Shown here: piece after piece, positions 18,640-51,878 of the stretch
How the letters are laid out: each line of letters begins with the position of its first letter
Numbering within the stretch: position 1 is the stretch's first letter
NCBI GenBank assembly: GCA_950097015.1
Contig: CATNEN010000009.1
Coordinates: forward strand, 1,550,001 to 1,614,000
DNA: 64,000 bases
Direction: 5' to 3'
DNA from: Macrostomum hystrix
Taxonomy: Eukaryota; Animalia; Platyhelminthes
Program-made: the position numbers and the translations under genes
Notes under the pieces: generated by a model
Seen by the model: the letters and a program-made list of their open reading frames with translations, nothing else
What the model was told of the DNA's origin: nothing
Database searches by the model: none

Positions 18640-19060
18640 TCAAGGACTCAGGTGCCAGAGCACCAACTGCAGTGCTCGAACTCAAGGACTCAGGTGTCAG
18701 AGCACCAACTCCAGTGCTGGAACTCAAGGACTCAGGTGTCAGAGCACCAACTGCAGTGCTCGAACTCAAGGACTCAGGTGTCAGAGCACCAACTCCAGTG
18801 CTGGAACTCAAGGACTCAGGTGTCAGAGCACCAACTCCAGTGCTGGAACTCAAGGACTCAGGTGTCAGAGCACCAACTGCAGTGCTCGAACTCAAGGACT
18901 CAGATGTCAGAGCACCAACTGCAGTGCTCGAACTCATGGACTCAGGTGTCAGAGCACCAACTCCAGTGCTCGAACTCATGGACTCAGGTGTCAGAGCACC
19001 AACTCCAGTGCTCGAACTCATGGACTCAGGTGTCAGAGCACCAACTTCAGAGCTCGAATC
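18640..19060. repeat. 42-bp minisatellite (gaactcaaggactcaggtgtcagagcaccaactgcagtgctc)
   Basis: About 10 tandem copies. Confidence 0.92.
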
Positions 19061-21715: not shown

Positions 21716-22280
21716 TTGGTTGGGGATCTAGTCAGTTCTGATTGGTTGCGGATCTAGTCGGTTCTGATTGGTTGACGAGATAAACATATTTGATTGGCTG
21801 ATTCACTGCAAATATGATTGATTGTCTATTATCTGAATTTGCTGATGGATGAATTATTGTATTAAAAATGTAAGCTAATAAATGTAAAGGCACTGAATGA
21901 CGGACTATAAGTTATTTTGCTGTACAACCTAGCCACCAGTACATCTACAGTATTCAAAGCATTGTCTAGAAATTATTCTGTCTAATTAATTTATGAATAT
22001 AGTCACGATATATTTGTAGTTTAATCATATCGTTTGCCTGTTGTTAGTTTTGCTTTGTTCTTAATTATTTAAAAGTCTATCAAATCACTAATTGAATAAA
22101 AAAGAAAAAAAGGCTTTTGATAAATTCTTATATTAATTTTACTGGCGCGAATTTTGAGACCCCAGACAAAACACGCGTGCTGTTTAAAATATTTTAAGCT
22201 TCACTTTTCTAAGTATTTTAGTTCCGCTGAGAACTACAAGAGACATTAGTTGTCCGTGAGACCTACTCAATTCTAAATCT

Positions 22281-29746: not shown

Positions 29747-32700
29747 ATGAAATCTGCAATAATTAACAATGAATGTGGGCCAGCGAAGCTGCAATCTGCA
29801 GTTCGCCTGCTTCAAGATGGCCTTGCCGATGTGCTGCAAAAATCCTATAGTTTGAACAAGCCGCTGGACCTGAAGGAAGGCCTTCAGATGGTGCGAGATC
29901 ATGCTGGTGAATTCGCGCCCGACTTGACTGTCCAGAAGGAGCTTCTTGGAGCTCTGGACAGAGCAGACGATGTTGTAAGCAGAATTTGTCAGCAAGAGTT
30001 CGACGCCTGCCGTTGCGAGCACGACATGGAGTGTCTGCTGAAGCTGGCATCCTTGATGGGACTCCATGAGTTCAGAGCGATAGCCAGTGAGCACACTGGA
30101 ACTGCAGCTGCCAGCGAAGGGTGGGAGAAGCTGAAGGCCGAGGGAAACGAGCATTACAAAAGTGGAAGGTGGGCGGAGGCCATGGACTGCTACACGAAGG
30201 CGATCCGAGTCAATGCGAAAGTGCCAGTTCTGTACTCCAACCGAGCCCTGTGTGAGATGCAACTGGCCAAGTTCGATTTGGCTCGCGAGGATGCCGAAGA
30301 CGCCATCGATCTGGACCCGAAGCAGGTGAAATTCTACCGCATCTTGTCTGATGCGCTCTTCAGGCTCGAGCTGTTCCAGGAAGCTCTGAGTGCTTGCGAA
30401 GACGGTCTGAATCTCGATCCGAGAGACGAAATTCTGGTGTCAAGGGCACGTGGCTGCAAGGCTGCTATCGTCCACAAAGAAATCAAGATGCACCCCAAGG
30501 CTGGTGGCTTTGAATCTGTAAGAGATTCACGAGTTAGAAATAACATATTAGATACAATGCTTAAGAAAGCGTCAGAATCAGAAATTTCGGCTGATGAAAT
30601 CGGCTTGGTTGATGCCACCACGATGCAAACGATAAAGAAAATCAGAGAAGCCCACCTCATTTTGCAGTCATGCAGAGGCAACGCTCGCGAGGAGCAGAAG
30701 GCATTCAAGATCTTCGAGGCCGCTGCGAAACGAGGCAGCGCAGAGGGGCTTTACAATATGGCTCTGATGTACTATGATGGACAGGCTGGACTGACGCGCG
30801 ATCCAAAGAAATGTTACGATTTGTGTCGCAAAGCTGCTGAGCAGAAGCCTTATTTGAAATTCAAAGCTGCCGGTTTGATTCATGCAAACATTGGTGTCGC
30901 CGAAGCCGAGAACTCCATTGCCATGGCCTTTAGAGATGGGCTGATAGTTAAGCAGGATGAAAAACTGGCCTTTCAGTGGTTTCTAAAGTCCGCAAAGCAT
31001 GGCTGTCCGTCCGCAATGAACAATTTAGGCCGAGCCTATTACAATGGCTACGGCTGTGAGAAAAGCCTGGAGTCTGCTCGCTTCTGGTACCAGAAATCTG
31101 CGGACCTCGGACAGTCGGAAGCGCAGTTTAACCTGGCTTTTTTGCTTGAAAATTGTGAAGGAGGACCTGCAGACATACCGAAGGCAGCTGAGCTACTCAA
31201 GTCTGCCGCTGATCAGGGTCTCCCAGGTGCGCTTATTGCACTGCAGCAGCTAATGCGTTCAGGTGCTAACGGATCAAAGTCTATGGAAGCTCCTAAAAAG
31301 ATCGTGCAACGAAGGGCTGACTCAAATGAGAAGGAGGCACTGTATCTCATCGGAATGAACTACTTACTGGGTGAAGGTGGCTTCGCAAAAGACATGTCAG
31401 AGGCTGAAAAGTACTTGAGAAAGGCCTCTAAGCTCAATCACAATGGAGCCACAGTCGCACTTGGTGAAATTCTCCTGAAACAAAACAGAAACGAAGATGC
31501 CATTCCTTTCATTTGGAAAGCTGCAGAGGACGGAGATAAAGACGCTCAGCGGACCCTCGGCAAATTGCTGGCACTTGGTCATGGCTGTGGCCGTGATGAG
31601 ACTCAAGCTCGGCGATGGCTGCTCCGTTCTAAGATGAGCAAGGATGATGTCGATGAATTTATCAAGTACTCTGCAGCAGTTAATGATTTCGAAGCTGCTG
31701 AAGGTCTCGAGCAGTGTGGAATTCAAATGTTTGAGCGAATCGAACGATTTGCTACGTCTTTTGTCCCTGCCCAGGAGGATAAAAAAGACATAAACGCCAT
31801 TTTTAAGCTCTTGGGCCCAAAAAACTCTCGCCATCCCGCGTGTGCGCCAATGTCTTATTCTACTTTGGAGCATAAAATGCAACTGATGGCACAGAAGGCT
31901 CTCGAAGGATCGAAAACTGCCCAAAGCCTTTTCATTGCTATTGATCTCATAAAGCAGGCGTCTTCAGCGTTGGATAGCCAGAACCCATCCGAAGCGTTTC
32001 GCCTGTTCAGAGAAGCTAATCGAGCTTGGCAACCTCTTCCTATGGATCTAGAGACCTGGGATCGTCTATTCGCTGCCGCAAAAGAGGCTATAGAGAGAAA
32101 TCCAAAGCATGCTGATGCGCTGTTTGTTATGGTGCATTGCAACACTGTCAAGAAGCTCTGCAGCCTTCCCGAGCTTCAGCGCATGGCATTAAAGTGCACC
32201 ATTTTGAATCCTGACGTTGCCGACTACCACACCCTTCTGGGCTGCATGTATGCGTTTAATTGTGATTATGAGTCAGCTTTAAAGTCAATCGAGCGAGGAC
32301 TAGCGCTTGAGTGGGAGCCTGAGTGGCTCTATGATAAGGCGTCTGCCATGAGGCTTCGAGATGTAAGAGAGCACCAAAAAGTGATCGATATCTACGAGGA
32401 ATACCTTTCCTCGTGTGAGCCAGACAGCCGTCATGTTCCGAAAGCCTTGTACTCAATCGCCGATGAGTACTTCGCTATGAATGACATTGAAAACGCGCGC
32501 AAGTTCTTTAACAAAGGCCTTCGAGCCGAGAGTCCGGATCTGAGGCTCCCATTTTTCGAACCAGTAGATGATTTTCCTCCGAAAATGCTGCTCAAAATTC
32601 AACTCGATGCCGAAGCACGTAAGAGCTCAGTGCTCAAAGCGCGCACGAGCTCTGCGACTTCCGCTGCTTTCCAGTCCGGTCAAGGCCAGTGTGCGAACTG

Positions 32701-32812
32701 TAACAAGGCCGGAGCTTCAAGCAGGTGCAGCAAGTGCAAGAAAGCCTTCTATTGTAATCGTGATTGCCAGCTGAATCACTGGAAAGTGCACAAGAAGCAA
32801 TGCGCTGTCTAG
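29747..32812 (+). CDS. Paralog 1: degenerate HEPN-like N-terminus + TPR + SEL1-repeat array + TPR + zf-MYND, 1021 aa, intronless CDS
   Basis: TPR (KLKAEGNEHYKSGRWAEAMDCYTKAI..LYSNRALCEMQL.KF..A.EDA..AI.LDP) and multiple SEL1 repeats (SAMNNLGRAYYNGYGCEKSLESARFWYQKSADLG). C-terminal MYND CANC..RCSKCKKAFYCNRDCQLNHWKVHKKQC. AG acceptor at 29731-32 just before the ATG. Confidence 0.92.
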   Translation: MKSAIINNECGPAKLQSAVRLLQDGLADVLQKSYSLNKPLDLKEGLQMVRDHAGEFAPDLTVQKELLGALDRADDVVSRICQQEFDACRCEHDMECLLKLASLMGLHEFRAIASEHTGTAAASEGWEKLKAEGNEHYKSGRWAEAMDCYTKAIRVNAKVPVLYSNRALCEMQLAKFDLAREDAEDAIDLDPKQVKFYRILSDALFRLELFQEALSACEDGLNLDPRDEILVSRARGCKAAIVHKEIKMHPKAGGFESVRDSRVRNNILDTMLKKASESEISADEIGLVDATTMQTIKKIREAHLILQSCRGNAREEQKAFKIFEAAAKRGSAEGLYNMALMYYDGQAGLTRDPKKCYDLCRKAAEQKPYLKFKAAGLIHANIGVAEAENSIAMAFRDGLIVKQDEKLAFQWFLKSAKHGCPSAMNNLGRAYYNGYGCEKSLESARFWYQKSADLGQSEAQFNLAFLLENCEGGPADIPKAAELLKSAADQGLPGALIALQQLMRSGANGSKSMEAPKKIVQRRADSNEKEALYLIGMNYLLGEGGFAKDMSEAEKYLRKASKLNHNGATVALGEILLKQNRNEDAIPFIWKAAEDGDKDAQRTLGKLLALGHGCGRDETQARRWLLRSKMSKDDVDEFIKYSAAVNDFEAAEGLEQCGIQMFERIERFATSFVPAQEDKKDINAIFKLLGPKNSRHPACAPMSYSTLEHKMQLMAQKALEGSKTAQSLFIAIDLIKQASSALDSQNPSEAFRLFREANRAWQPLPMDLETWDRLFAAAKEAIERNPKHADALFVMVHCNTVKKLCSLPELQRMALKCTILNPDVADYHTLLGCMYAFNCDYESALKSIERGLALEWEPEWLYDKASAMRLRDVREHQKVIDIYEEYLSSCEPDSRHVPKALYSIADEYFAMNDIENARKFFNKGLRAESPDLRLPFFEPVDDFPPKMLLKIQLDAEARKSSVLKARTSSATSAAFQSGQGQCANCNKAGASSRCSKCKKAFYCNRDCQLNHWKVHKKQCAV

Positions 32813-33487
32813 TTGTGTAACTATTGACAACCAACACGAGAAGCTCTCGCCAGACCAGACAAATAAACATGTGAACTATTTTCAATTAAGCAGGTTTAGT
32901 CAAGATTTTTTCTCAATGTTAGTAACAATTGTGTTCTCAATTAGCCTGAGGGTGTAATGCATTGAGATATTGTTGTGTGAGTCCGAATCGAACTTGGATT
33001 TCCCACATGTTCTGACCTTTAATGTTCACTTTCACATGCGCCAGAATTTTTGTCAGCGAATGCTGATGATTTTGCACAGCTTCCTGACTGTTCCGGCGCT
33101 CCGAGAAGGCAATTTTGATCTACCTGAAACTCCAACAGCTCATTTTTTCTTTTCTAGGCTGATTTTAGCCTGAGTCGTACTGAAAAATGTAATCCTGCTG
33201 TCCTTTGTTATTATTTTTTCATTTAGAAACTCCTGAATCTCAAGCTGTTTACTAATAAACAGCATCATTGTATTCAAGGTGTCACCTGCTGCAATAATAT
33301 GTTACATTGTCGGCCAGTTTGGCTAAGTTATTTCGTTTTTTGTTCAAATAATGTTTCCTTTTCATGTTTACTTTCCATGTGGCAACAGTCCAAGTCATAA
33401 TTTTTTAGTTCTTCAGACCCCGTTTTTCAGAATTTAACTTAGCAACCTTTACTAACATTGGATGTCTGATCTAGTGGAATCGAGTGG

Positions 33488-36400
33488 TCTAATCTTGTTA
33501 TCCAGTGATCTAGTATTGTTATCGAGTGATCTAGTATTGTTATCGAGTGATCTAGTATTGTTATCGAGTGATCTAGTATTGTTATCCAGTGATCTAGTAT
33601 TGTTATCCAGTGATCTAGTATTGTTATCGACTGATCTAGTATTGTTATCGAGTGATCTAGTATTGTTATCCAGTGATCTAGTATTGTTATCGACTGATCT
33701 AGTATTGTTATCCAGTGATCTAGTATTGTTATCTAGTGATCTAGTATTGTTATCGACTGATCTAGTATTGTTATCGAGTGATCTAGTATTGTTATCCAGT
33801 GATCTAGTATTGTTATCCAGTGATCTAGTATTGTTATCGACTGATCTAGTATTATTATCGACTGATCTAGTATTGTTATCGAGTGATCTAGTATTGTTAT
33901 CCAGTGATCTAGTATTGTTATCCAGTGATCTAGTATTGTTATCCAGTGATCTAGTATTGTTATCCAGTGATCTAGTATTGTTATCCAGTGATCTAGTATT
34001 GTTATCGAGTGATCTAGTATTGTTATCGAGTGATCTAGTATTGTTATCCAGTGATCTAGTATTGTTATCTAGTGATCTAGTATTGTTATCCAGTGATCTA
34101 GTATTGTTATCCAGTGATCTAGTATTGTTATCCAGTGATCTAGTATTGTTATCTAGTGATCTAGTATTGTTATCCAGTGATCTGGTATTGTTATCCAGTG
34201 ATCTAGTATTGTTATCCAGTGATCTAGTATTGTTATCTAGTGATCTGGTATTGTTATCCAGTGATCTAGTATTGTTATCGACTGATCTAGTATTGTTATC
34301 GAGTGATCTAGTATTGTTATCCAGTGATCTAGTATTGTTATCGAGTGATCTAGTATTGTTATCCAGTGATCTAGTATTGTTATCCAGTGATCTAGTATTG
34401 TTTTCGACTGATCTAGTATTGTTATCCAGTGATCTAGTATTGTTATCGACTGATCTAGTATTGTTATCGAGTGATCTAGTATTGTTATCCAGTGATCTAG
34501 TATTGTTATCCAGTGATCTAGTATTGTTATCGAGTGATCTAGTATTGTTATCGAGTGATCTAGTATTGTTATCCAGTGATCTAGTATTGTTATCGAGTGA
34601 TCTAGTATTGTTATCGAGTGATCTAGTATTGTTATCGAGTGATCTAGTATTGTTATCCAGTGATCTAGTATTGTTATCCAGTGATCTAGTATTGTTATCC
34701 AGTGATCTAGTATTGTTATCCAGTGATCTAGTATTGTTATCGAGTGATCTAGTATTATTATCGAGTGATCTAGTATTGTTATCGAGTGATCTAGTATTGT
34801 TATCGAGTGATCTAGTATTGTTATCCAGTGATCTAGTATTGTTATCCAGTGATCTAGTATTGTTATCCAGTGATCTAGTATTGTTATCGAGTGATCTAGT
34901 ATTGTTATCGAGTGATCTAGTATTGTTATCGAGTGATCTAGTATTGTTATCGAGTGATCTAGTATTGTTATCGAGTGATCTAGTATTGTTATCGAGTGAT
35001 CTAGTATTGTTATCGAGTGATCTAGTATTGTTATCGAGTGATCTAGTATTGTTATCGAGTGATCTAGTATTGTTATCCAGTGATCTAGTATTGTTATCGA
35101 CTGATCTAGTATTGTTATCCAGTGATCTAGTATTGTTATCTAGTGATCTAGTATTGTTATCGACTGATCTAGTATTGTTATCGAGTGATCTAGTATTGTT
35201 ATCCAGTGATCTAGTATTGTTATCCAGTGATCTAGTATTGTTATCGACTGATCTAGTATTATTATCGACTGATCTAGTATTGTTATCGAGTGATCTAGTA
35301 TTGTTATCCAGTGATCTAGTATTGTTATCCAGTGATCTAGTATTGTTATCCAGTGATCTAGTATTGTTATCCAGTGATCTAGTATTGTTATCCAGTGATC
35401 TAGTATTGTTATCGAGTGATCTAGTATTGTTATCGAGTGATCTAGTATTGTTATCCAGTGATCTAGTATTGTTATCTAGTGATCTAGTATTGTTATCCAG
35501 TGATCTAGTATTGTTATCCAGTGATCTAGTATTGTTATCCAGTGATCTAGTATTGTTATCTAGTGATCTAGTATTGTTATCCAGTGATCTGGTATTGTTA
35601 TCCAGTGATCTAGTATTGTTATCCAGTGATCTAGTATTGTTATCTAGTGATCTGGTATTGTTATCCAGTGATCTAGTATTGTTATCGACTGATCTAGTAT
35701 TGTTATCGAGTGATCTAGTATTGTTATCCAGTGATCTAGTATTGTTATCGAGTGATCTAGTATTGTTATCCAGTGATCTAGTATTGTTATCCAGTGATCT
35801 AGTATTGTTTTCGACTGATCTAGTATTGTTATCCAGTGATCTAGTATTGTTATCGACTGATCTAGTATTGTTATCGAGTGATCTAGTATTGTTATCCAGT
35901 GATCTAGTATTGTTATCCAGTGATCTAGTATTGTTATCGAGTGATCTAGTATTGTTATCGAGTGATCTAGTATTGTTATCCAGTGATCTAGTATTGTTAT
36001 CGAGTGATCTAGTATTGTTATCGAGTGATCTAGTATTGTTATCGAGTGATCTAGTATTGTTATCCAGTGATCTAGTATTGTTATCCAGTGATCTAGTATT
36101 GTTATCCAGTGATCTAGTATTGTTATCCAGTGATCTAGTATTGTTATCGAGTGATCTAGTATTATTATCGAGTGATCTAGTATTGTTATCGAGTGATCTA
36201 GTATTGTTATCGAGTGATCTAGTATTGTTATCCAGTGATCTAGTATTGTTATCCAGTGATCTAGTATTGTTATCCAGTGATCTAGTATTGTTATCGAGTG
36301 ATCTAGTATTGTTATCGAGTGATCTAGTATTGTTATCGAGTGATCTAGTATTGTTATCGATTGATCTAGTATTGTTATCGAGTGATCTAGTATTGTTATC

Positions 36401-37362
36401 GAGTGATCTAGTATTGTTATCGTGTGATCTAGTATTGTTATCGAGTGATCTAGTATTGTTATCCAGTGATCTAGTATTGTTATCGAGTGATCTAGTATTG
36501 TTATCCAGTGATCTAGTATTGTTATCGAGTGATCTAGTATTGTTATCCAGTGATCTAGTATTGTTATCGAGTGATCTAGTATTGTTATCGAGTGATCTAG
36601 TATTGTTATCGAGTGATCTAGTATTGTTATCCAATGATCTAGTATTGTTATCTAGTGATCTGGTATTGTTATCCAGTGATCTAGTATTGTTATCCAGTGA
36701 TCTAGTATTGTTATCGAGTGATCTAGTATTGTTATCGACTGATCTAGTATTGTTATCGACTGATCTAGTATTGTTATCGAGTGATCTAGTATTGTTATCG
36801 ACTGATCTAGTATTGTTATCGAGTGATCTAGTATTGTTATCGACTGATCTAGTATTGTTATCGAGTGATCTAGTATTGTTATCCAGTGATCTAGTCTTGT
36901 TATCCAGTGATCTAGTATTGTTATCCAGTGATCTAGTATTGTTATCGAGTGATCTAGTATTGTTATCCAGTGATCTAGTATTGTTATCCAGTGATCTAGT
37001 ATTGTTATCGAGTGATCTAGTATTGTTGTCGAGTGATCTAGTATTGTTATCTAGTGATCTAGTATTGTTATCCAGTGATCTAGTATTGTTATCGAGTGAT
37101 CTAGTATTGTTATCCAGTGATCTAGTATTGTTATCGAGTGATCTAGTATTGTTATCCAGTGATCTAGTATTGTTATCGAGTGATCTAGTATTGTTATCGA
37201 GTGATCTAGTATTGTTATCCAGTGATCTAGTATTGTTATCCAGTGATCAAGTATTGTTATCGAGTGATCTAGTATTGTTATCCAGTGATCTAGTATTGTT
37301 ATCCAGTGATCTAGTATTGTTATCGAGTGATCTAGTATTGTTATCGAGTGATCTAGTATTGG
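33488..37362. repeat. 21-bp satellite array (gtgatctagtattgttatc(g/c)a), ~3.9 kb
   Basis: About 184 tandem units; source of the artefactual 1315-aa and 1060-aa ORFs. Confidence 0.98.
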
Positions 37363-38137
37363 GAATGAATGGCTTAGTCCTTCAGAGTCAGAGCTTCCTG
37401 AAGGTTTAATATTTTCTGCTGAAGCCGCAGTGATGGTTTTTTCACAGCTTCCTTACTGTTCAGGCGCCACCTGAAGGCATTTTGACCGACCTGAAACTCT
37501 AAACGTTCCTTTCTTCTATAGGCTGATTGTAGTCTGAGTTGCGTCATGGCCATGAAACCTGGTGCCATTATTTTTTAAGCGTTTTCTAAGTCCTGAATAT
37601 GCAGTTGTGGTTCTGGACAAATAAAGCGCATTTTCCACTGTCTGTGCGTAAGTGTTTTGTTTTTAACACTGTTGACATCAGACAATTGTCTTTGTTGTGT
37701 AAAATTATTTTTATTGTGTGGTGGAAATGATAATTAGACAATTTCTGCGTAAATAGAACCTGAACGATGGGCCTATGACAAGGAGTACAGCTGCACAGTC
37801 TGTTGTGCCAAATGTCAGATTTCTAGGTGGTTCAGCTATCCTTGCTAATCTGATTGTATTATTAATGAGCGTATTCTATAAAATACTACTCTGTGGTAGA
37901 GCATACGAGCAAATAAAACTTTGGCGTTTAAACAGCAGCGTGTGCGGGCCATGGATGAATAATATAACTTATAAGTTATATAAGTTATATTATTCATCCA
38001 TGGTGCGGGCTGGCCCAGAAGTAAGTATGCATTCTGTGGTTCATTTTTACTTACTGTATATTTTTATTCTCATAAAGGCGCGTTTGGGTGCATGTGACAA
38101 CCTGCTTAATTGCTGATGCTGTGCCTACTTAGATTAC

Positions 38138-38439
38138 ATTGAACAACGCTGAGCAAGGGTTTTAATGAACATCGTTAAACTATGTCTATGGGGGATTTCC
38201 ACCACAGATTCTATATTATCTGGTAATATAGGTAATATAGAATCTGTGATTTCCACAGGGAATTCCCTTTGAATTCTTGTATTTCAAACGTTATAAGTGT
38301 GTATTTTCATGGAGAAACGCTGGGATTCCCGCCATTAAATACCGCGGGAGTTTTAATGGACGACATTAAATAGAATAGAAACCCCGGTGGAATGTCTATG
38401 GTGCAAACAGAACCGCTGGGAATCCCAGCGTTGCTCAAT
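38138..38439. mobile_element. Putative MITE/foldback-like element with terminal and internal inverted repeats
   Basis: attgaacaacgctg (38138-51) vs cagcgttgctcaat (38426-39), 13/14 inverted match. Internal perfect 16-bp inverted pair 38203-18/38233-48 and 15-bp pair 38316-30/38418-32. No coding capacity. Confidence 0.5.
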
Positions 38440-40624: not shown

Positions 40625-40860
40625 GCAGGGTTTCACAACAACAACAAAATATGCTGTCCAGGTGAAAATAGGCATGCCTGACCTGAAAGCATGCAGTTCA
40701 TCGCATGGGTGACCTCACTGGCCGCACAGTGGATATGCAGCACCTCAATGGGCACCTTGTCTGGACCAAGCGCTTTGCCACCCAGTGTCTTCTGAGCAAG
40801 CATCACTACATTGGCAATTGTACCTAGCGCTACACTGAAGCTCTTCTCCAACAGCAATGG
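40625..40860 (-). mobile_element. Decayed non-LTR retrotransposon fragment (RT N-terminal linker, RTE-like)
   Basis: GKALGPDKVPIEVLHIHCAASEVTHAMNCML resembles the GPD..motif region and aligns with GPDEVSLRLRCVAAQVRGVMNRVL at ~48080-48140. Confidence 0.55.
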
Positions 40861-41665
40861 CGTCTCTGGCGGTAGCATCAGGATGTTGTCAGGGTTTTCA
40901 TTGCCCTTTGTGAATGGACCATATAAGATTATAAGCTAATCTATACTGTGTCTAAACACTATGCACAATTAAATTAAGTTATTCTGATATAGTATCTTGC
41001 TTTTTAAATTGGAGTAAAATGCTAGGGTTAAGGAACACTGCAGCTTCTCATATGCAACTCCATCCTATAACAGCAACCCAATAAATATATTCAAGAGTAT
41101 CGATTCCTGCTGCCATAAGCAAACTTTGGACATTTTAGAGGCTATGTACATGTATAAAGATCAGAATGCTATCCTCAACTGCCAGCTAGCTATGGGGGTG
41201 CTAGCCATCTACTCTGTTTTAGCTTGGAGTGTGTTCTGCTGCACCGTTTGCTCTCTCTCTCTCTCCTCTCTCTCCCTGGCCTTCTATTCATATTAGACTT
41301 GACTAAACCTGATTTGACCATAGATCGAATATAAGCTAGATCTATGGATTTGACTGAAAATTACAATATGTACTAAGGTACATCCATTGATTTCAGAAAT
41401 ATATTTATGAAACTACTGTGTTCACTTTTATTCACTGACCTAATAATGACCAATAAGGTCGAAATGGATTGGCTGATTAAAATTAAATATATAATGTTTA
41501 TTCTATATTTCCTTTAAATTAAGTAAACTAATTTATCAACACATCAATATTTTCACAAAGTTCAGAATATTTTTTCTCATTGTTATGTTAGACTTTTGTA
41601 CTGTTTTGATCAAAAATTTTCTATAAGTTTTTATAACTTACTGTTTCACTTTCAGCTGCTCGCTT

Positions 41666-44539
41666 ATGGATTCAGCGCATCTTAAAAATGCTAAAGCTGC
41701 TGCGTACATACAATATGCAGTCAGTCTACTCCAGTGTGACATAATTGCAATCTTAAAGAAAAAAAACCTTGCAAGGACAAACAAAATGGACTTCAATAAC
41801 TGTCTTCAAGATGTGCAGAAAAATGTCAAAAAGTTCCTTTCTGACTTGGATTCCCAAAAAATGCTTCTCGGGACTTTGAACAGGGCGAGAGAAATTAGAA
41901 ACCGCTATTCACACCACGATTTTGATGCCAACCGTTTTGAGCACGACATGGAGTGTCTACTGAAGCTGGCATCCTTGATGGGACTGAACGAGTGCCGAGA
42001 GAAAATCATGGAATTTGTTGGAACTGTAGCCAATGAATGGGAGAAGCTGAAGGCCGAGGGAAACGAGCATTACAAAAGTGGAAGGTGGGCGGAGGCCATG
42101 GACTGCTACACGAAGGCGATCCGAGTCAATGCGAAAGTGCCAGTTCTGTACTCCAACCGAGCCCTGTGTGAGATGCAACTGGCCAAGTTCGATTTGGCCC
42201 GCGAGGACACCGAAGACGCCATCGAACTGGACCCGAAGCAGGTGAAATTCTACCGCATCTTGTCTGATGCGCTCTTCAGGCTCGAGCTGTTCCAGGAAGC
42301 TCTGAGTGCTTGCGAAGACGGTCTGAAGCTCGATCCGAGAGACGAGGTGCTCATTTTAAGAGTACGAGATTGTAAGGCCTACATAACTGATAAGAAAATA
42401 AAGTCGCACCCTATTGCTGGGGGTATTGAGCAAATGATGAATCCAGAACTTTGCAAAAAGCTTTGCGACCAACATATGAAAGATCTATTTGAATCTGATG
42501 CTACACCTGACGAAGTTGGCCTAGTGGACCGTGTTAATATGGAAACCGCTCTGGAAATCAATAAAGCGCACCGTATTTTTCAACCAAACAAAGATAGCCT
42601 TGAAGCTCAGCGAGAAGCGTTTAAAATATTTGAATCTGCTGCAAAGCGTGGCAGTGCAGAGGGACTGTACAATATGGCAATCATGCACAAGGACGGAATG
42701 GCTGGGCTGACCTGTGACTCGAAGAAATATCTTGAATTATGCCACAAAGCTGTCGAGCAGAAGCCCTTTTTAAAATTCCATTTTGGAGCCATTTTTCCTA
42801 ACATTGGCGTCGCAGAAGCAGAGAACTCCATTGCTATGGCGTACAGAGACGGGCTAACCGTTGATCGAGATGAAAAAGTTGCCTTCAAGTGGTTTCTTAA
42901 GTCTGCAAGGCATGGCTGCCCATCCGCAATGAACAATCTAGGCTTGGCTTTGCGGAATGGTGCGGGCTGTGAAATCAATCTAAAATCGGCTCGCTGGTGG
43001 CTCCAGAGATCCGCTGACCGTGGCCAATCTGAGGCCTTAGTTAATTTAGCTGGTATGTTAGAAAACGGTGAAGGAGGACCCATTGACGCACCGAAAGCCG
43101 TGGAGCTTCTTAAGGCTGCTGCTGATCAGGGCTTTCCCGATGCTCTTCTGGAAATGCAGCGTCTGATGCGATCTGGGGCTAGCGGAGTCGGACCGCTTAA
43201 CGAATCTAAGAATTTAGTTCAGAGAAGAGCCGATTCAGATGAAAAGGAGGCGCTATTTGTCATGGGAATAAACTATATGTTAGGAGAAGGTGGATTTGTT
43301 CAAGACTTCGCCGAGGCTGAAAAGTATCTCAGGAAGGCATCCGATATGAGTCATGAGAGAGCTGTCTTTGTCCTTGGACTCGTTCTTCTACATCAGAGAA
43401 AAGACAAGGATGCCGTGCAGTTCATACGGAGGGCTGCAGAGAGTGGTAATAAGGACGCTCAGCAGATCCTTGGCCAACTGTTGGCTTTTGGTCATGCCTG
43501 TGAACGCGATGAAATTCAAGCCCGCCGATGGCTGCTTCGTTCAAACGAAAAGCCGGATTCCGTTGATGATTTAATTAAACTAGGCGCAACCATTACCGAC
43601 TTTGAGGCTACAAACAAGCTTTCACAGTCTGGTCTCACCTGCCCTGAGCGTATAGAAAGATTCATGGTGTCTTTCGCTCCAAGCGAGATCATAAAAAAAT
43701 CTCTCGAAGAAGTCCTCAAGCTTTTTAATCCGAATCAACTGGCCCTACTCCATCCAGCGCATTCTGTATGTAATTCCAAGCTAGAAAAAACGATGCCGTT
43801 GATGGCGAATAGAGCTGCTCAGGGATCTAAAACCGCGCGAAAGTTTTTTTATGCTCTGAATCTTTTAAATAAAGCGTGCCTCGCATTGGAGAGTAAAAAA
43901 CCAGCAGATGCATTCCGGCTGTATAGACAAGCTGAAAGAACCTGGCAGCCCCTTCCAGTATCTACTTTTATCTGGAGTAAGCTTTCTGCTGCCGCTGAGG
44001 AAGCCTTTGAGAGCAATCCAAATGATGCTGATGCTCTGTTCGTCCTGCTGCACTATAAATCTGCTTCGAAACTTTACAGTACTGCAGAGCTTCTTCGCAT
44101 GGCCTTGCACTGCACGACCTTGAATCCTCGTGTTGCAGACTACCACAGCCTTTTGGGTAATTTGTATGGATTTAACGGTGATTATATCTCTTCGGGTAAG
44201 TCCATTGATCGAGCTCTTGAACTCGAACCGGAGCCTGAATGGCTGTACAATAAGGCGACTTCGTTGAGGCTTCAATGCAGCGAAGACCACCAAGCTGTTA
44301 TCAATGCATATGAACAGTACATTAAGTCGAGTGAACCAGATAGCCGCCAGGTTCCAAAGGCTTGGTACTGTATAGCTATGGAGCACATAGCCATGCATGA
44401 TAGAACAAAGGCAAGAGAGTATTTTCAGAAGGGGCTCCAAGCAGAGCATCCGGACGTGAGGCTGCCGTATTTTGAACCGGAAGATGATTTCCCTCCTAAA
44501 AAAATTCTTCGAGTATTGTTTTCATTGGGAGCTATGTAG
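41666..44539 (+). CDS. Paralog 2: HEPN-like domain with intact R-N-x3-H motif + TPR + SEL1 array + TPR, no MYND, 957 aa, intronless CDS
   Basis: Colinear with paralog 1. N-terminus ..LNRAREIRNRYSHHDFDANRFEHDMECLLKLASLMG (R78-N79-R-Y-S-H83). Ends at ..DDFPPKKILRVLFSLGAM* without a MYND finger. AG acceptor 41654-55 before the ATG. Confidence 0.92.
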   Translation: MDSAHLKNAKAAAYIQYAVSLLQCDIIAILKKKNLARTNKMDFNNCLQDVQKNVKKFLSDLDSQKMLLGTLNRAREIRNRYSHHDFDANRFEHDMECLLKLASLMGLNECREKIMEFVGTVANEWEKLKAEGNEHYKSGRWAEAMDCYTKAIRVNAKVPVLYSNRALCEMQLAKFDLAREDTEDAIELDPKQVKFYRILSDALFRLELFQEALSACEDGLKLDPRDEVLILRVRDCKAYITDKKIKSHPIAGGIEQMMNPELCKKLCDQHMKDLFESDATPDEVGLVDRVNMETALEINKAHRIFQPNKDSLEAQREAFKIFESAAKRGSAEGLYNMAIMHKDGMAGLTCDSKKYLELCHKAVEQKPFLKFHFGAIFPNIGVAEAENSIAMAYRDGLTVDRDEKVAFKWFLKSARHGCPSAMNNLGLALRNGAGCEINLKSARWWLQRSADRGQSEALVNLAGMLENGEGGPIDAPKAVELLKAAADQGFPDALLEMQRLMRSGASGVGPLNESKNLVQRRADSDEKEALFVMGINYMLGEGGFVQDFAEAEKYLRKASDMSHERAVFVLGLVLLHQRKDKDAVQFIRRAAESGNKDAQQILGQLLAFGHACERDEIQARRWLLRSNEKPDSVDDLIKLGATITDFEATNKLSQSGLTCPERIERFMVSFAPSEIIKKSLEEVLKLFNPNQLALLHPAHSVCNSKLEKTMPLMANRAAQGSKTARKFFYALNLLNKACLALESKKPADAFRLYRQAERTWQPLPVSTFIWSKLSAAAEEAFESNPNDADALFVLLHYKSASKLYSTAELLRMALHCTTLNPRVADYHSLLGNLYGFNGDYISSGKSIDRALELEPEPEWLYNKATSLRLQCSEDHQAVINAYEQYIKSSEPDSRQVPKAWYCIAMEHIAMHDRTKAREYFQKGLQAEHPDVRLPYFEPEDDFPPKKILRVLFSLGAM

Positions 44540-45220
44540 GAATTGTTATTGCGGAATGATTCACTCTGTGCTTCACCTGTCGTACGAGTCGACGCTTAGT
44601 AGAAATTTGAATTTAATGAAATGTTTATCACAATACCTGATGTTTTTATTAAAATATATATACTTTTTGTTCATAAAAACTCTGTTGCCAGCCGAACAAT
44701 CTTGTGTTCCTCCAGTTAATTCATTTTTTACTTTTAACGTTTGAGCATCCGCGTTGGACTATGTACTCATGTACTACTCGTACATGAGACGCTACATTTA
44801 CGAGTACATTTTTTCAACATGCATGTACTTTTTTGTTTTTGTTTACATGTTTTTAACAACACGAGCGAAATTATATTTATTATTCAGAAACTTTAAATCG
44901 TGTCTGTATTTGCACAAGTATTTTTCCATAACTTATCGGCCCTTTCACACAGCTATCAAACAAATCGTTTTATGATGTAAATGTATTTGCTGTGAAAAGG
45001 AAAGTAAACACTGTGTTCTAGCCTTGGTTGATGGTAACGTGAAATGGGCTTACACTAGTAGTTTTTAACCATTGATTGCTTCATCGACTCAGCTTGTCAG
45101 CGCAAGAATTTTTTCTCTTTGAATTAGTAGTTTTACTTTACTCGTACCTTTAGAGAAAAAAAACAAGGAAATTGTTAATTTTTCCTTCGTCTTATTAATT
45201 GACAGTAGAACTACCAACCT

Positions 45221-45620
45221 ATTTTGCCTCCCGTCTTTACACCAAGGGGGAATTCCAGCAGAATTTTTTGACGGCTTTGAATGCTGTCAGCGTTGGGTGG
45301 TGACTGATTGGTTGACAAACTAGACGATGCTGTCCTGACATTTAGGCTTCCTAATATTCCTAATGTCCTAATATTTAGGCGTCAGCCATGAAATTGGCGA
45401 AATTTGCATCAGGGTGTCCATAGTGGCCTATTTCCACCTGTTTTTGCCCTTGAAGGTCCAACAGTCCGTCTAGATGAAGATAGGTGACCACCGAAGTGGG
45501 AGATAATACAGGTACCTTCGGGTGACGTGCTGATAAAGTTTGGAGGCCTGGCGCTGCACTGAGGCGCAGTGCAAAATTGTGTGTAGGGAAATACACTAGC
45601 GCTTATGGGAAAAATCCTAC
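45221..45620. repeat. Dispersed ~380-400-bp element, copy B (homologous to 25801-26180)
   Basis: Same ordered conserved strings as copy A, same orientation. Confidence 0.85.
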
Positions 45621-46239
45621 CTTTTGTCAGAAGCTAGTTCTACTGTTAATAAAAAAAGAATGTTATATTTTTGTTATATTTTTATATTTTAGTTTTGTTC
45701 TTTTCATACTGTTGATTGTGTTTATTATCAGTGACAATGATTCTCAGAATGTTATGATTGTTTTTTTATATTTTAGAAAATAAGGAAATTATACAAATGC
45801 CCTACTTCACATTGCATAAACAGAAGTAGAACTTGTAGTATAAGCAAATATTATATGCGCCTATGTGATGGGAATTCAAGTAAAACTTCGAAGTTAATGG
45901 TGTTTAATTATTAATCATTTGAAGTGATCAAAGCTGTGATCATGATCGGATCATCTGAGCCTAGATATCATTTGATCACAGCACGCGATAAAAACTGATG
46001 CATAAAAGTCAGCAATCCTTAAATTAAAAAACTCGCTCGAGCTTAGTTAATACAAAAACATATGTTAGAAAGTAAAACGGCCCTTTTAGGGCCACGGTAT
46101 AAATAATGCTACGAAGTGCAAAGAAGGCGTGAGAGTTAAAACCAGACGGATGGTCTGAGTCAAAAGAGGGAGGTGCCCTCTTGTAATTTGAAACTAACAT
46201 TCTTTAGAACATCCTGGACATCGGGTGTTGAATACGTTT

Positions 46240-46900
46240 CCAGGTAAACCATTCTCGAAATTGGGGAAGACCAGTTCAGCCTATGGTCCAGGATGGTCCC
46301 TAGACATTTGGTTTGCTTACAGAAGGAAATTTCCTTTCCGTAAAGCCTAAGCGGCCGTATCTGCCACTTGTTCCTGCTGGTGAACACGATCACTGCAGTC
46401 TTTGTCTCCGAGCGCTTCAGACCACAGCGACCCGCCCATTGCTCAGCAGTGTGGATGAAATTCCGAAGCAGGTCCTTGAGAGTATCAGGGGATGGGCCAG
46501 ACGCCACAGCAGCCCTAGAGAAGCTCGGCAATGACCATAGGAGAGAAAAGAATAGGAGAGAGCACCCCTCCCTGCGGGTTTCCTTTCGGACGCGGACCGT
46601 CCGAGCAGGACCGGCCCAGCAGGCTGGCGGTGACCGTGCTATGACTGATCATATACATGATCCATCTGGTGAGGGATGAGTGTGTGCGTCTCTCACATAG
46701 GGCTTTGCGGAACGTCTCGAAGAGGCAAATGCAAAGCGTTGTCAAAGACACCGTTGATGTCCAAGATCCAGAGCGAAGCCGTTGCCAAGCACAACTTTCT
46801 CCAGTTTGTCGACAAGAACGTGCAGCGCGCTTTCGGTGGAGCGACCCGCCCGAAAAGCATGTTGTATAGCAGGTTTACTTGCCGCCTGCTACCTTCTGCC
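46240..46900 (-). mobile_element. Frameshifted non-LTR retrotransposon RT fragment (R1/I/Jockey-like)
   Basis: Broken frames give LDINGVFDN, KGNPQGGVLSPILF, GLKRSETKTAVIVFT and KCLGTILDHRLNW, which correspond to LINE RT subdomains 3, 4 and 6-7; stops and frameshifts are present. Confidence 0.85.
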
Positions 46901-47429
46901 GACACTAACCGAAAGACTTGAACTCGTACTGACCACAGAGGCCAACAATTATGAGTGTGAGACTCACATCTCAAAGCTTCAGTGCTGGAGCATATCTACG
47001 AAGCAGTGTATTTTATATTCAAGCGATAAGGCACAAGTGTTTAGCAGTAGGGGGGTCAGAGAGAGATATATAACAGATAACACACAAGCAGTTATCTCTC
47101 TGCCCCGCGTTGCCATGGTCCCCAACCCAACACACCAGCCGCGAGCATTCTAGGCACGAGTTCGCAGGCTGATAGGGTGCATAGGTTCTCGGTCTCTGCG
47201 TCATTGCTTTCCAGGCCGTCAGGTCAGCCGGTCTGGCCCGCTCAGGTCTATTTTGAGCGCTGGGTGGGTCGAAATCCAGATGAAGGTCGCTGATTGAAAG
47301 GAGCACCGATGTAAGCGCTTTTCAAACGCTTACATGCTGGTTGTCGCTAAGCGGTGTGTTCTTCAGTTCCACTGAGAGAAGAAGCCATGGGACCAGTCTC
47401 TCCATCAGATTAACCAGGAAGGTGGTTAG

Positions 47430-48150
47430 GCTGATTTGTCTTCTGACGAGGACAGAAGGGCGAGGTCTTCGGGGTAGCCAAGCACGTTGAGGCGCTTCTC
47501 ATTATGGCGGCGACCAATGCGTCTGCGTAGCAGAAATTAGTCGTCTTCGGCTGAGGGCAGCGCTGTCCGAAGCACCCAGTCCAGGAGAAGCACGAAGAGA
47601 AACGGGGCCAGCGTGTCGCCCTGCGGAACTCCTGACGAGGTAGCAAACAGGTCGGAGAGGCCCTCCGCCGTCACATTATAAGCAGCGCGCGTGTCGCGAT
47701 ACAGCGACATGACCGCTGTAACTAGCTGCTCTTGCACCCGGTACGCACGGAGGATGAATGGGAGTGCGGCTCTCGACACCGAGTCAACGACGATCAGCAC
47801 TAACTGGCGGATGCGTGCCTCCTCGATGACACGGCGCAGTGCGAGGATCTGGGTCACCGTTGCGGCCGGAACCCGTTCTGTTCGTAACGGAGGTTACGGG
47901 CCCAGAACAGACTGCAGGCGATCGAGGAGCAGTCTGTTGAAAAGCTTCGCGGACATGAGTGAGATCGCGCGATGATCTTCCTTCCGCGTTGTCCCGGCCT
48001 TCTTCGGGATCGGCACGATGTGCGAGATAGTCCACTCGGTAGGTGCGGTGGCGCCGGCGAGCACGCGGTTCATGACGCCTCTGACTTGCGCAGCCACACA
48101 GCGGAGCCGCAGCGAAACCTCGTCGGGGCCGCTTTGCCGCCTGGTGTTCT
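47430..48150 (-). mobile_element. Frameshifted RTE-like non-LTR retrotransposon RT fragment
   Basis: EWTISHIVPIPKK..HRAISLMS.AKLFNRLLLDRL, EQNGFRP, TQILALRRVIEE, VDSVSR, GVPQGDTLAPFLFVLLLDWVLR and a YAD remnant. The FIDF.KAFD segment appears deleted and frames are broken. Confidence 0.88.
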
Positions 48151-49520
48151 CCGAGCAAAATTAAACAAATATTCTCCTTAATGCATAATTAATGAGCCTT
48201 TTACATAACGCAATATTTACATAACGCCACCCACCTCTCTGCACCTCCACCAAGCTAACTGTACAATGTCAAGCCAATCAGAACGTGGCATGGCTCGGTT
48301 GCACACTACGCAGGGTCAAGGCTGGGTCAACGAAGACTTTTCATAACGGTTTAAGCGCGTAACGACAGATCTCTCCCATATATAATATATAAATATAAAT
48401 ATATGTATAAATCACGCCTGACCCATAATAGAAAGAATGAAATCTGAAATAGACAAATGCTAAAAATAGGATGCTCGTATAAACTTGTCTCATTTTCGCA
48501 GTGAATTTACCGAAGCTAAAGCTGGAAATCTGTATCGTGAACTTATTAGCAACCGTTAAGAAGAGTGCGTCTTGTATATATGTACGGCTTCGCAATGGCA
48601 AGTGAAGTAACAAATTCTAATCTGTAAAAAATAATTAAATTAACAATACTAATAACTTTTTTAGATGCAAGAAATGCTTTTTCAATTGACACATCGATAT
48701 TAAAAGTTTTCAGGTGCATTACCGAAGCAATAAACTTCAGTTTTCGTTTTTCGTTTTTTTAATCTATATATGTCCTAGGCAACCTAAATTCTGCTTAGTG
48801 CGTGATCGAATAGCAATAATAATAACATTAGTTAATAGAACTATATTTTTTGTCTGGTTTATTAATTTTCAAACTATACTTTCTTGTATAAGTTTTATGT
48901 ACATTTAGCACACTGTATTGCTTGTTAATTCTTGCGAGCATTTAATAGCTCTTGATAGCATTTAATAATATAACTATTTCCTATAATTATTTTTCGTCAT
49001 TGGCTTTGTTCATTAACTCTATAAAATACTTTCTCATGCATGATTCTGTCAATACAAAAGTAAATAATGCTGTAATTATATTGTTTTTGCACTCCATTAT
49101 ATTATTTTATTATAATATTTATACTTGTTGTTTTATTAATAACATAACAGATAAACAATACATTATTACAATATTTATATAGCTTCATACATATCATTTT
49201 GCATCAGTTATCTATTTAGCTTTGCTTTCTAATCCTTTGTTAACAGTTCAGAACTTCAAATCAAACCAATCTGGCATATAGTACTGTACTCCTAGAGCCT
49301 CCTAGCCCTAATGGGTTTGATTAAAAATTGGGAACTCATCTGACCAGATGATGTGAACCCACTGCTTTCGGCACCAATGCCAATTAGCTCGAGGAAGCAT
49401 ACTTGTGCTCAACTTTCCTGAATGACATTGCTCGATTATCTATCGGATTTCAAATTATGTGGTAGGCTAGCAGCGATTTTTAATGCAAACAACTACATCG
49501 ATTTCAGTTCTCAAGTCGTC

Positions 49521-51878
49521 ATGGATCTTGAAAAGCTGCGATCTGCAGTCAGAGTGCTCCAAACAGTCTTTGCCACTGTACTACAGGAGTCTCATGCCTA
49601 CAAGCCCCGAGACTTCAAGGAAGGCCTTCAGATGTTGCGAGATTACGCTGTTGATGCTTCCCAGAAGGAGCTTCGAAGGGCTCTGGACAGAGCAGACGAT
49701 GTTGCAAGCAGAATTTGTCAGCAAGAGTTCGACGCCTGCCGTTGCGAGCACGACATGGAGTGTCTGCTGAAGCTGGCATCCTTGATGGGACTCCATGAGT
49801 TCAGAGCGATAGCCAGTGAGCTCACTGGAACTGCAGCTGCCAGCGAAGGATGGGAGAAGCTGAAGGCCGAGGGAAACGAGCATTACAAAAGTGGAAGGTG
49901 GGCGGAGGCCATGGACTGCTACACGAAGGCGATCCGAGTCAATGCGAAAGTGCCAGTTCTGTACTCCAACCGAGCCCTGTGTGAGATGCAACTGGCCAAG
50001 TTCGATTTGGCTCGCGAGGACGCCGAAGACGCCATCGATCTGGACCCGAAGCAGGTGAAATTCTACCGCATCTTGTCTGATGCGCTCTTCAGGCTCGAGC
50101 TGTTCCAGGAAGCTCTGAGTGCTTGCGAAGACGGTCTGAAGCTCGATCCGAGTGACGAGATTCTGGTGTCAAGTGCACGCGACTGCGAGGCTGCTAAAAC
50201 GACCAGGGCGAGTGTTGCGGATATGAGAAATCTAGACCTTTCGTCTGGCGATGTTAACGAGGAACTAATGGACGCATGGAAGGCAGCAGAGCATCTGAGA
50301 GCTGCTGCAGATCAGGGTCATCCAGGCGCCCTGATGTCACTGCAGCAGCTGCTGCGGTCTGGCGCGCATGGCGCAAACGCGATGGATGAATCGAAGAAGA
50401 TCGTGAAAGAGATGGCCGACCTGAATGAAAAAGAGGCATTGTTTCTTATCGGGATGAACTACCTGGTCGGGGAAGGCGGATTCAAGAAAGATTTCACGCA
50501 GGCTGAGAAGTACCTACGAAAGGCGGCCGATTTAGATCATATTCAAGCCGCGCATGAGCTAGCGAACATTCTTCTTCAACAGGAAAAACATGTCGAAGGT
50601 GTGCGTTATCTTCGGAAAGCTGCCCAGAGCGGCTACAGAAAATCTCAGAGGGCTCTCGGCTTTCTACTGGCTGTGGGCCATTGCTGCGAACGAGATGAAA
50701 CCCAGGCTCGCGCTTGGTTGCTCCGCTCCAGGCTGAGCAAGTCTTTTGTCGAAAATGTTATCCTGCAATCAGCCTGCTTAGTCCAGTTTGAAGCTGTCAA
50801 CGGCCTGTCGCACTCTGGACAAACGTATTCTGAACGCTTTGAACGACTCGCCGCATCAAAGTTTCCTAATGGACCCAAGAAAGAGACGCTTGAAGCAATG
50901 TTCCGACTCTTCAAGGAAACGCAGGAGAAACCACCTCACCCAGCGTGCGGTCCGGTGAGCGACATGGGGAAAAAGATGTTCCGAATGGCGCTGAGAGCTG
51001 CTCAAGGATCTAGAACGGCGCAACAGTTCTTAGTTGCCTTGGACATTCTTAAACAAGCCAGTTTGGCACTGGAGGCCACCGACGCATCGGAGGCCTTTCG
51101 TTTGTACCGACTGGCGGATAGAATACTGCAGCCTCTCCCTCTGGATTTCGCGTTCATGCGCAAACTGGCTGCTGCCGCAAAAGAAGTATTTGAGAAGAAT
51201 CCTAGAGATGCGGATGCATTGTTTGTAATAGTGCACTTTAGCATTGCTACCAAAAGCTGCAGTTTGCCTGAGATGCTTCGCATGGCTCTGAACTGCGCCA
51301 TCTTGAATCCAGATGTTGCCGAATTCCAATTCCTGCTTGGCAACTTGTACGGATTCAACAACGAATTTGCTCTCGCTTTGAAGTCCATTGAGCGAGCTCT
51401 AAAGCTAGAATTTGAGCCTCAGTGGCTTTACAGTCGAGCATCTGCCCTGCGTCACCAGAGCCTGAGTTCTGGTGGAAAAGAATCGCTAGTTGTCATCAAG
51501 GCCTTTCAAGAATACATTTCCGCAAATGAGCCAGACCACCGGCATGTACCAGAGGCTTTGTACTGCATCGCCGAGGAGTACATGGGCATGAAAGATTTTG
51601 CTAGCGCGCGCGAGTACTTTGACAAAGGTCTTCAAGCCGAGAGCCCCCACGTGAGGCTCCCATTCTACGAACCGCTGGACAATTTTCCATCGAAGGTTCT
51701 GCTTAAAATAGCGCTCGGTCGCGTTGCGGCAGCTTCCCAGTCCGGTCAAGGCCGTTGTGCGAACTGTGACAAGTCCGGAGCTTCAAGCCGGTGCAGCAAG
51801 TGCAAGAAAGCCTTCTATTGTAATCGTGATTGCCAGCTGAATCACTGGAAAGTGCACAAGAAGCAATGCGCTGTCTAG
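49521..51878 (+). CDS. Paralog 3: degenerate HEPN-like + TPR + shortened SEL1 array + TPR + zf-MYND (about 785 aa; ORF open from 49422)
   Basis: Colinear with paralog 1 except for an internal in-frame loss. ATG 49521 (MDLEKLRSAVRVLQ) aligns with the paralog N-termini and follows an AG acceptor at 49506-07. The MYND tail is near-identical to paralog 1. Confidence 0.9.
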   Translation: MDLEKLRSAVRVLQTVFATVLQESHAYKPRDFKEGLQMLRDYAVDASQKELRRALDRADDVASRICQQEFDACRCEHDMECLLKLASLMGLHEFRAIASELTGTAAASEGWEKLKAEGNEHYKSGRWAEAMDCYTKAIRVNAKVPVLYSNRALCEMQLAKFDLAREDAEDAIDLDPKQVKFYRILSDALFRLELFQEALSACEDGLKLDPSDEILVSSARDCEAAKTTRASVADMRNLDLSSGDVNEELMDAWKAAEHLRAAADQGHPGALMSLQQLLRSGAHGANAMDESKKIVKEMADLNEKEALFLIGMNYLVGEGGFKKDFTQAEKYLRKAADLDHIQAAHELANILLQQEKHVEGVRYLRKAAQSGYRKSQRALGFLLAVGHCCERDETQARAWLLRSRLSKSFVENVILQSACLVQFEAVNGLSHSGQTYSERFERLAASKFPNGPKKETLEAMFRLFKETQEKPPHPACGPVSDMGKKMFRMALRAAQGSRTAQQFLVALDILKQASLALEATDASEAFRLYRLADRILQPLPLDFAFMRKLAAAAKEVFEKNPRDADALFVIVHFSIATKSCSLPEMLRMALNCAILNPDVAEFQFLLGNLYGFNNEFALALKSIERALKLEFEPQWLYSRASALRHQSLSSGGKESLVVIKAFQEYISANEPDHRHVPEALYCIAEEYMGMKDFASAREYFDKGLQAESPHVRLPFYEPLDNFPSKVLLKIALGRVAAASQSGQGRCANCDKSGASSRCSKCKKAFYCNRDCQLNHWKVHKKQCAV

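Follow-up and report, generated by a model that had tools for sequence, protein, structure and literature searches.

The 64,000-nucleotide window of the flatworm Macrostomum hystrix analysed here (contig CATNEN010000009.1, positions 1,550,001 to 1,614,000 of the forward strand; all coordinates below are those of the window unless a contig is named) carries a tandem trio of paralogous genes, copies 1, 2 and 3, whose proteins join an N-terminal HEPN domain to tetratricopeptide repeats (TPRs), Sel1 repeats, further TPRs and, in two of the three, a MYND zinc finger. As a first-pass annotation of this DNA had proposed, the genes are colinear and intronless; they lie on the + strand and are open throughout, with zero internal stops according to the open reading frame (ORF) calls and translation of the window, and tblastn of each copy's protein against the window recovers these three as its only family members. 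Copy 1 lies at 29747-32812 (1021 amino acids) and, from its ORF and Pfam matches, encodes a degenerate HEPN domain, the N-terminal TPR block (TPR1), Sel1 repeats, C-terminal TPRs and a MYND finger. Copy 2, at 41666-44539 (957 amino acids), has the same order with an intact HEPN motif and no MYND. Copy 3 is an 818-amino acid ORF at 49422-51878, with a degenerate HEPN domain, TPR1, two Sel1 stretches, C-terminal TPRs and MYND.

The TPR-Sel1-TPR part of this description is confirmed by Pfam matches in all three copies. In copy 2, the Swt1-like HEPN domain covers residues 1-120 (41666-42025) and is followed by TPR1, three TPRs of the Hsp70/Hsp90 EEVD-clamp type (residues 124-230, 42035-42355), by a Sel1-repeat solenoid at approximately 42617-43540 (PF08238, E 4.9e-29, five stretches, with Foldseek matches to Sel1 proteins) and by a C-terminal TPR-like solenoid at approximately 43763-44455, recognised from TPR_8, TPR_17 and TPR_CcmH at residues 814-925 and from the helical repeats of the AlphaFold2 (AF2) model. 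The full-length AF2 model of copy 2 is all-alpha, with a predicted local distance difference test score (pLDDT) of 87, and Foldseek searches with it return generic Sel1/TPR solenoids only. Where the description needs amending is copy 3. The Sel1 repeats score 130.6 bits over six stretches in copy 1, 100.1 over five in copy 2 and 34.7 over two in copy 3, which has lost the greater part of the block. Its true start is also probably Met34 at 49521, giving 785 amino acids, because a TTTCAG acceptor lies 13 nucleotides upstream of this codon as in the other two copies, where the homologous ...CAG/CTGCTC acceptor stands 14 nucleotides before the ATG of copy 1 and 11 before that of copy 2; the predicted spliced-leader acceptors of copies 1 and 3 thereby fall just before 29733 and 49508. 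The MYND fingers of copy 1 (residues 982-1019, 32690-32803; PF01753 E 4.6e-10) and copy 3 (residues 779-816, 51756-51869; E 8.9e-10) reach 39.8 and 38.9 bits against a cut-off of 22.7, and both show the C4-C2HC ligand pattern fitting the PF01753 model by which membership was judged. No other copy of the trio matches this family, so Pfam agrees with the observation that, within the trio, the intact copy lacks MYND and both degenerate copies carry it.

Several kinds of evidence bear out the HEPN identity first predicted for the N-terminal domain. Residues 1-125 of copy 2 give sub-threshold matches to the Swt1-like, Apea-like and Cthe_2314-like HEPN families of Pfam, and three homologues whose full-length sequences align from the first residue of copy 2 onward and cover the HEPN domain, P0019 (43.6 bits), P0135 (35.4) and P0016 (30.8), exceed the cut-off of PF18731 (HEPN_Swt1); copies 1 and 3 have no match to this model. 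The AF2 model of the copy 2 domain, built on a 20-sequence alignment, is all-helical (pLDDT 90, predicted template modelling score (pTM) 0.83). An exhaustive VIA search of 48,161 PDB representatives places a Cas13-type HEPN domain (Z 8.4) and yeast Swt1's C-terminal domain (4pqz, Z 7.9 over 113 residues) at the top, with further matches to 1wwp, 2hsb, AbiF, HEPN toxins, the sacsin HEPN domain and Csm6. The top match in the ESM Atlas is a Swt1-like HEPN cluster (TM 0.71), and the language-model neighbours of the domain belong to HEPN_DZIP3 and HEPN_Swt1 clusters. A profile of the domain run against PDB sequences yielded chance-level matches only. Together with the shared helical-bundle fold and the equal placement of the R-N-x3-H motif, these models and profiles make the Swt1-like assignment sound, because the sequence evidence joins Z scores that would not be decisive alone for a helical bundle.

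It is at this motif that the copies part. Copy 2 retains it as R78-N79-R-Y-S-H83 (41897-41914), while the corresponding position reads V77-S78-R-I-C-Q82 in copy 1 (29975-29992) and A95-S96-R-I-C-Q100, in ORF numbering, in copy 3 (49704-49721). All three key residues are lost in both, and the replacements reported from a gapless alignment (R to V or A, N to S, H to Q) proved exact on re-alignment. The motif lies inside a tract of copy 1 (29932-30467, 536 bp) that is 97.2% identical by blastn to 49661-50196 of copy 3, and that spans the dead motif, the end of the HEPN domain and TPR1. The rate of synonymous divergence (dS) is 0.03-0.28 within it, against saturated dS elsewhere. Since the dead motif sits inside a 97%-identical tract, it is, judging by this position, one loss spread by gene conversion; the two dead copies of the first-pass annotation are indeed both degenerate, but through one shared event and not two. 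Two further segments are alike in the same way. The MYND tails of copy 1 (32663-32818) and copy 3 (51729-51884) are 94.9% identical by blastn, and a TPR1 tract of about 310 bp (about 42037-42346 in copy 2) differs hardly at all among the three copies, with a dS of 0.02-0.05. The same segment, the end of HEPN and TPR1, is homogenised in a trio of Macrostomum lignano.

Outside the tracts, dS is saturated, the non-synonymous rate (dN) is 0.25-0.35 and dN/dS, a rough figure given this saturation, is about 0.2-0.3 for every pair. Since this holds for every pair, all three copies are, by this measure, old duplicates under purifying selection. A contig set from a related strain differs by 11 synonymous and 11 non-synonymous changes. 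The whole-protein tree joins copies 1 and 3 as sisters, with copy 3 on the longest branch, and trees from regions outside the tracts return the three copies as an unresolved polytomy. A recent duplication of copies 1 and 3 was rejected on account of this polytomy and of dN values that are equal there for all pairs.

Expression was judged from the contigs of three runs, which comprise 43-48 million letters apiece, as would fit transcriptomes, and have no recorded conditions. Contigs of copy 2 run from 41655 to at least 45291, unspliced, with no joint to another exon and no coverage upstream. In all three runs they open with 19 loose letters that correspond to nucleotides 16-34 of the 35-nucleotide Macrostomum spliced leader (PMC8629364), and the genomic AG at 41654-41655, 11 nucleotides before the ATG, marks the trans-splice acceptor together with the contig starts. 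The mRNA of copy 2 is therefore spliced-leader trans-spliced, otherwise unspliced, and free of a hidden MYND exon, because its contigs are unjoined and no MYND remnant was found 3' of the gene. We counted the 19-mer 36 times across the genome, with part of the occurrences forming tandem arrays, and not once in the control. Over the shared TPR1 tract, contigs break and depth reaches about 2.7 times the flanking level. Expression extends to copy 3, because a contig of 1697 nucleotides leaves the shared tract into it, with an exact match at 50160-50189. At 41656-41690, once trans-splicing has taken place, the ATG with which the spliced leader ends starts a short upstream ORF of 10 codons, out of frame with the start of copy 2, and copy 1 has a comparable short leader ORF. 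The tandem arrays of the 19-mer lie on contigs C15, C17 and C42 with a spacing of about 11.6 kb and are probably spliced-leader RNA genes inside a larger repeat unit.

The association between an intact motif and the absence of MYND does not extend beyond the trio. The M. hystrix assembly (220,453,370 bp in 42 contigs; PMC10468722, Table 1) contains exactly five family members, the trio on contig C9 and two on contig C41. Both C41 copies have an R-N-Q-Y-S-H motif and a MYND finger, so that in C41a an intact motif and MYND occur together in the same genome. The second, C41b (C41:2131436-2137195, - strand), is interrupted in frame by a TAA that follows codon 659, and its HEPN match begins only at profile position 31, so that the first helix is missing; it probably represents either a pseudogene or a truncated form. 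PF18731 searched directly against the genome matched nothing, but the controls stayed silent as well, and the search is uninformative. Counting only members of the family whose two ends are both present, which come from flatworms, oomycetes, a tardigrade and metagenome sequences, we found 12 with intact motif and MYND, six with intact motif and no MYND, and three to four with dead motif and MYND (Fisher p 0.53); two thirds of the intact-motif proteins (12/18) thus bear the finger. The colinear tandem trio that M. lignano has of its own (NIVC01000528.1) keeps all three motifs intact (3/3), with MYND in two copies and the third copy truncated. MYND presence varies independently of motif state. 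The proposal that an intact motif goes with the loss of MYND therefore fails on C41a, on the M. lignano trio and on the family count, and independence across the family, which the first-pass annotation had set beforehand as an outcome speaking against its own hypothesis, is what we found.

Dead motifs occur also in P0003 and P0005 of M. lignano, with an independent origin. Because these two sit in the other Macrostomum clade, catalytic loss is, on this placement, recurrent in the family, as is the loss of MYND. Trees from outside the tracts do not establish orthology between MYND-less copy 2 and the MYND-less P0001 of M. lignano. The middle part of P0001 is nearly identical to that of a MYND-bearing copy on a different contig, and its MYND loss is for this reason either recent or an annotation artefact. 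The deposited gene model behind another M. lignano protein, P0004 (NIVC01000528.1:85646-117670; 10001-22025 therein), appears to be a chimera that combines the N-terminus of tandem copy 1 with the body of copy 3 across the identical conversion tract, with the nested copy 2 skipped.

Searched against 1.84 billion representatives, the HEPN-domain profile finds 84 clusters, most of whose representatives have R[N/H]xxxH, and the long members share the order HEPN, TPR, Sel1, TPR, MYND. Given these 84, the blank result of a homologue search limited to residues 1-125 was taken as a word-index limit. The nearest database proteins are hypothetical proteins of M. lignano, 52-59% identical; other named members come from the rotifer Didymodactylos, the tardigrade Paramacrobiotus and the oomycetes Phytophthora infestans (PITG_12794) and Aphanomyces stellatus. 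All are annotated as hypothetical, PITG_12794 with the label 'MYND-type domain-containing protein'. Horizontal transfer or contaminated records may lie behind this patchy distribution over oomycetes, flatworms, rotifers and tardigrades; in the family tree, P0130 of Aphanomyces stands among animal and metagenome sequences, apart from Phytophthora. Searches of the searchable full texts brought up nothing relevant on HEPN combined with MYND, with Sel1 or with both Swt1 and MYND, and no relevant literature was found for PITG_12794 or the M. lignano gene identifiers. The 2013 survey of HEPN domains describes eukaryotic Swt1-like and DZIP3-like versions, but not this architecture (PMC3710099). The family of the trio is a conserved, uncharacterised HEPN architecture, widespread among eukaryotes and usually ending in a MYND finger, and this domain order with an intact R-N-x3-H motif is its ancestral form.

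Several known proteins come close without matching it. Swt1 itself combines its HEPN domain with a PIN domain and a HEPN dyad, and Ava_2192-type proteins have an AAA+ ATPase, all of them absent from the trio proteins, in which HEPN is N-terminal and fused to TPR, Sel1, TPR and MYND, unlike the Swt1-like versions of the 2013 survey. Active Swt1-like versions are described from bacteria and from Daphnia and Naegleria (PMC3710099). DZIP3/hRUL138-like proteins (PF18738) are likewise animal proteins that associate HEPN with TPR repeats and zinc-binding modules, and two distant relatives, P0083 and P0066 (the latter by its architecture), combine a DZIP3-like HEPN domain with TPR, Sel1 and MYND. The trio differs from DZIP3-like proteins in fitting the Swt1-like model and in having no RING, NACHT, Death or CARD domain and no large lineage-specific expansion. 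Sacsin, in which a HEPN domain accompanies a DnaJ domain and Hsp90-like domains, also differs from the trio proteins in architecture.

The second recognisable module is TPR1, whose best natural solved matches are STIP1/Hop, STI-1, RPAP3, SPAG1, CNS1, PP5, CHIP and SGT, all of the clamp type. It aligns with these EEVD-clamp co-chaperones over all three repeats (E 1e-10 to 1e-15 for single domains) and resembles them in the Lys, Asn, Asn and Lys of the clamp, matched by K129, N133, N164 and K194; it differs in the position of the arginine. These four residues and R197 are each conserved in at least 90% of the family. Since the fifth clamp arginine is shifted one position earlier, the binding of EEVD by TPR1 is uncertain on sequence grounds. 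We know of no co-chaperone with a HEPN domain beside such a TPR.

The reading that we favour, to which we give a probability of about 0.65, is that the trio consists of old tandem paralogues in which copy 2 is a ribonuclease (RNase) and copies 1 and 3 are non-catalytic binders, a case of ordinary subfunctionalisation with no active/decoy pair. Copy 2, from its motif and modelled fold, would be an active metal-independent endoribonuclease, which its solenoids and TPR1 would tether to other proteins, perhaps to chaperones by their acidic C-terminal tails. TPR1 would dock on an acidic C-terminal peptide, and the Sel1/TPR solenoids and the MYND finger, where present, would supply additional protein contacts. 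Copies 1 and 3 would have lost catalysis and yet remained selected and expressed as scaffold or binding proteins, possibly engaging the same partners or RNA with no cutting. Conversion keeps TPR1 nearly identical among all three copies. Catalytically inactive eukaryotic HEPN domains have indeed been proposed to be RNA binders (PMC3710099).

Several observations weigh against this reading. RNase activity, dimerisation and a binding partner are predictions from sequence and models. Residues 1-125 of copy 2 reach just 17.7 bits against PF18731 (E 0.0044), below its cut-off of 27.5 bits, a Foldseek search of the PDB with the HEPN model returns nothing at E <= 0.001, and Z scores of 7-8 are attainable by chance for helical bundles. 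In TPR1, R197 stands at K+3 and not at K+4 as in Hop and PP5, the dN/dS figures behind purifying selection are rough for the reason given above, and the expression of copy 1 is suggested only by the summed contig depth of about 2.7-fold.

HEPN RNases are known as effectors of prokaryotic defence (Cas13, Csm6, Abi and toxin-antitoxin systems), and in eukaryotes as RNase L, Ire1 and Las1. The first-pass annotation had seen in the trio an immune-type system of this kind, with copy 2 as a sensor-gated RNase and copies 1 and 3 as its pseudo-nuclease partners (decoys, inhibitors or adaptors), in the manner of paired immune receptors. In the form weighed here, the partners would be dedicated ones and would heterodimerise with copy 2 by way of the HEPN domain. 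The arrangement lends itself to such a view: an intact and two dead copies adjoin and are co-expressed at similar contig depth, the dead copies are under purifying selection, the converted helix after the motif and TPR1 are near-identical in all three and could preserve a common interface or ligand, and HEPN RNases generally act as dimers (PMC3710099). A complex prediction for the HEPN domains of copies 2 and 1 scored 0.00 with no control runs, and weighs neither way. Paired NLR/decoy receptors and HEPN-MNT pairs are similar in having linked genes, one inactive partner and a HEPN nuclease effector, but the genes of the trio lie head-to-tail, 5-9 kb apart, with a satellite and a decayed retroelement between them, and are separately trans-spliced into mRNAs of their own; there is no nucleotidyltransferase partner and no integrated decoy, diversifying selection is absent, and the sister species does not keep the pairing. 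The three intact motifs of M. lignano imply that the arrangement does not need dead partners, and the correlation between motif and MYND is absent within the genome as within the family, so that a conserved active and inactive partner with matching domain differences is not what C41a, the M. lignano trio and the counts describe. As for an arms race, we saw neither a large expansion, the family having five copies in this genome, nor diversifying selection, dN/dS being about 0.2-0.3 in every measurable window. With no immune evidence found for the system and no supporting evidence for its paired-receptor logic, we regard this explanation as improbable. A bolder picture, in which the family would be an unrecognised class of chaperone-tethered HEPN endoribonucleases ranging from oomycetes to flatworms, with TPR1 docked on the EEVD tails of Hsp70/Hsp90, the Sel1/TPR solenoid and MYND finger reading a client or a stress or infection signal, HEPN dimers then cutting RNA, and dead paralogues tuning or blocking them through heterodimers, strikes us as speculative and no easier to credit.

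It is also conceivable, if unlikely, that the family has no nuclease function, and that HEPN only mediates binding or dimerisation within a scaffold akin to co-chaperones, in which the motif change of copies 1 and 3 would matter little for function. The HEPN domain of yeast Swt1 is itself thought to be inactive (PMC3710099), a binding or dimerisation role has been proposed for the inactive HEPN domain of Swt1 and for that of sacsin, TPR1 is akin to co-chaperone TPRs, and in Macrostomum the motif was lost at least twice, with motif-less copies still selected. Against such a scaffold, no feature of the domain is better conserved than R[N/H]xxxH, in a range that reaches from oomycetes to animals, and this is hard to explain without catalysis. 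Very unlikely, in our opinion, is a last option in which copies 1 and 3 are duplicates degenerating into pseudogenes and the pattern is without functional significance. Signs of decay do exist in the family and at the locus, in the mostly lost Sel1 block and longest branch of copy 3, in the internal stop of C41b, and in the retroelement debris and satellites that fill the spacers; against them stand frames of 1021 and 818 amino acids that have remained open despite saturated dS, dN/dS values of about 0.2-0.3, intact MYND fingers in both copies and the transcription of copy 3.

The sequence surrounding the genes is rich in repeats. The spacer between copies 1 and 2 holds a 21-bp satellite of about 185 copies at 95% identity (33479-37361), which yields spurious ORFs of 1000 amino acids on both strands, and upstream of the trio lie satellites with units of 26 bp (22277-24752) and 14 bp (20908-21434). 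What looks, by inspection only, like a decayed non-LTR (long terminal repeat) retroelement separates copies 2 and 3, in the form of broken - strand ORFs whose motifs resemble reverse transcriptase (46100-48200), and a smaller reverse-transcriptase-like fragment lies upstream of copy 2 (40633-40878, - strand). Farther away, a gene resembling Golgi apparatus protein 1 probably contributes the exon seen as an ORF at 6664-7446 (- strand), which matches the cysteine-rich FGFR-type repeat (PF00839, E 3.9e-13); none of the remaining large ORFs that flank the trio in the window has a Pfam match.

Returning to subfunctionalised paralogues as the preferred reading, the trio offers natural active and inactive variants of one protein in an otherwise matched background, and a clear case of gene conversion passing a loss-of-function motif between paralogues. 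With its fixed and unusual combination of a co-chaperone-type TPR, Sel1 repeats and a MYND finger, and its presence in animals and oomycetes, including Phytophthora infestans, the family is a concrete candidate for a pathway of RNA decay or stress that would be new.

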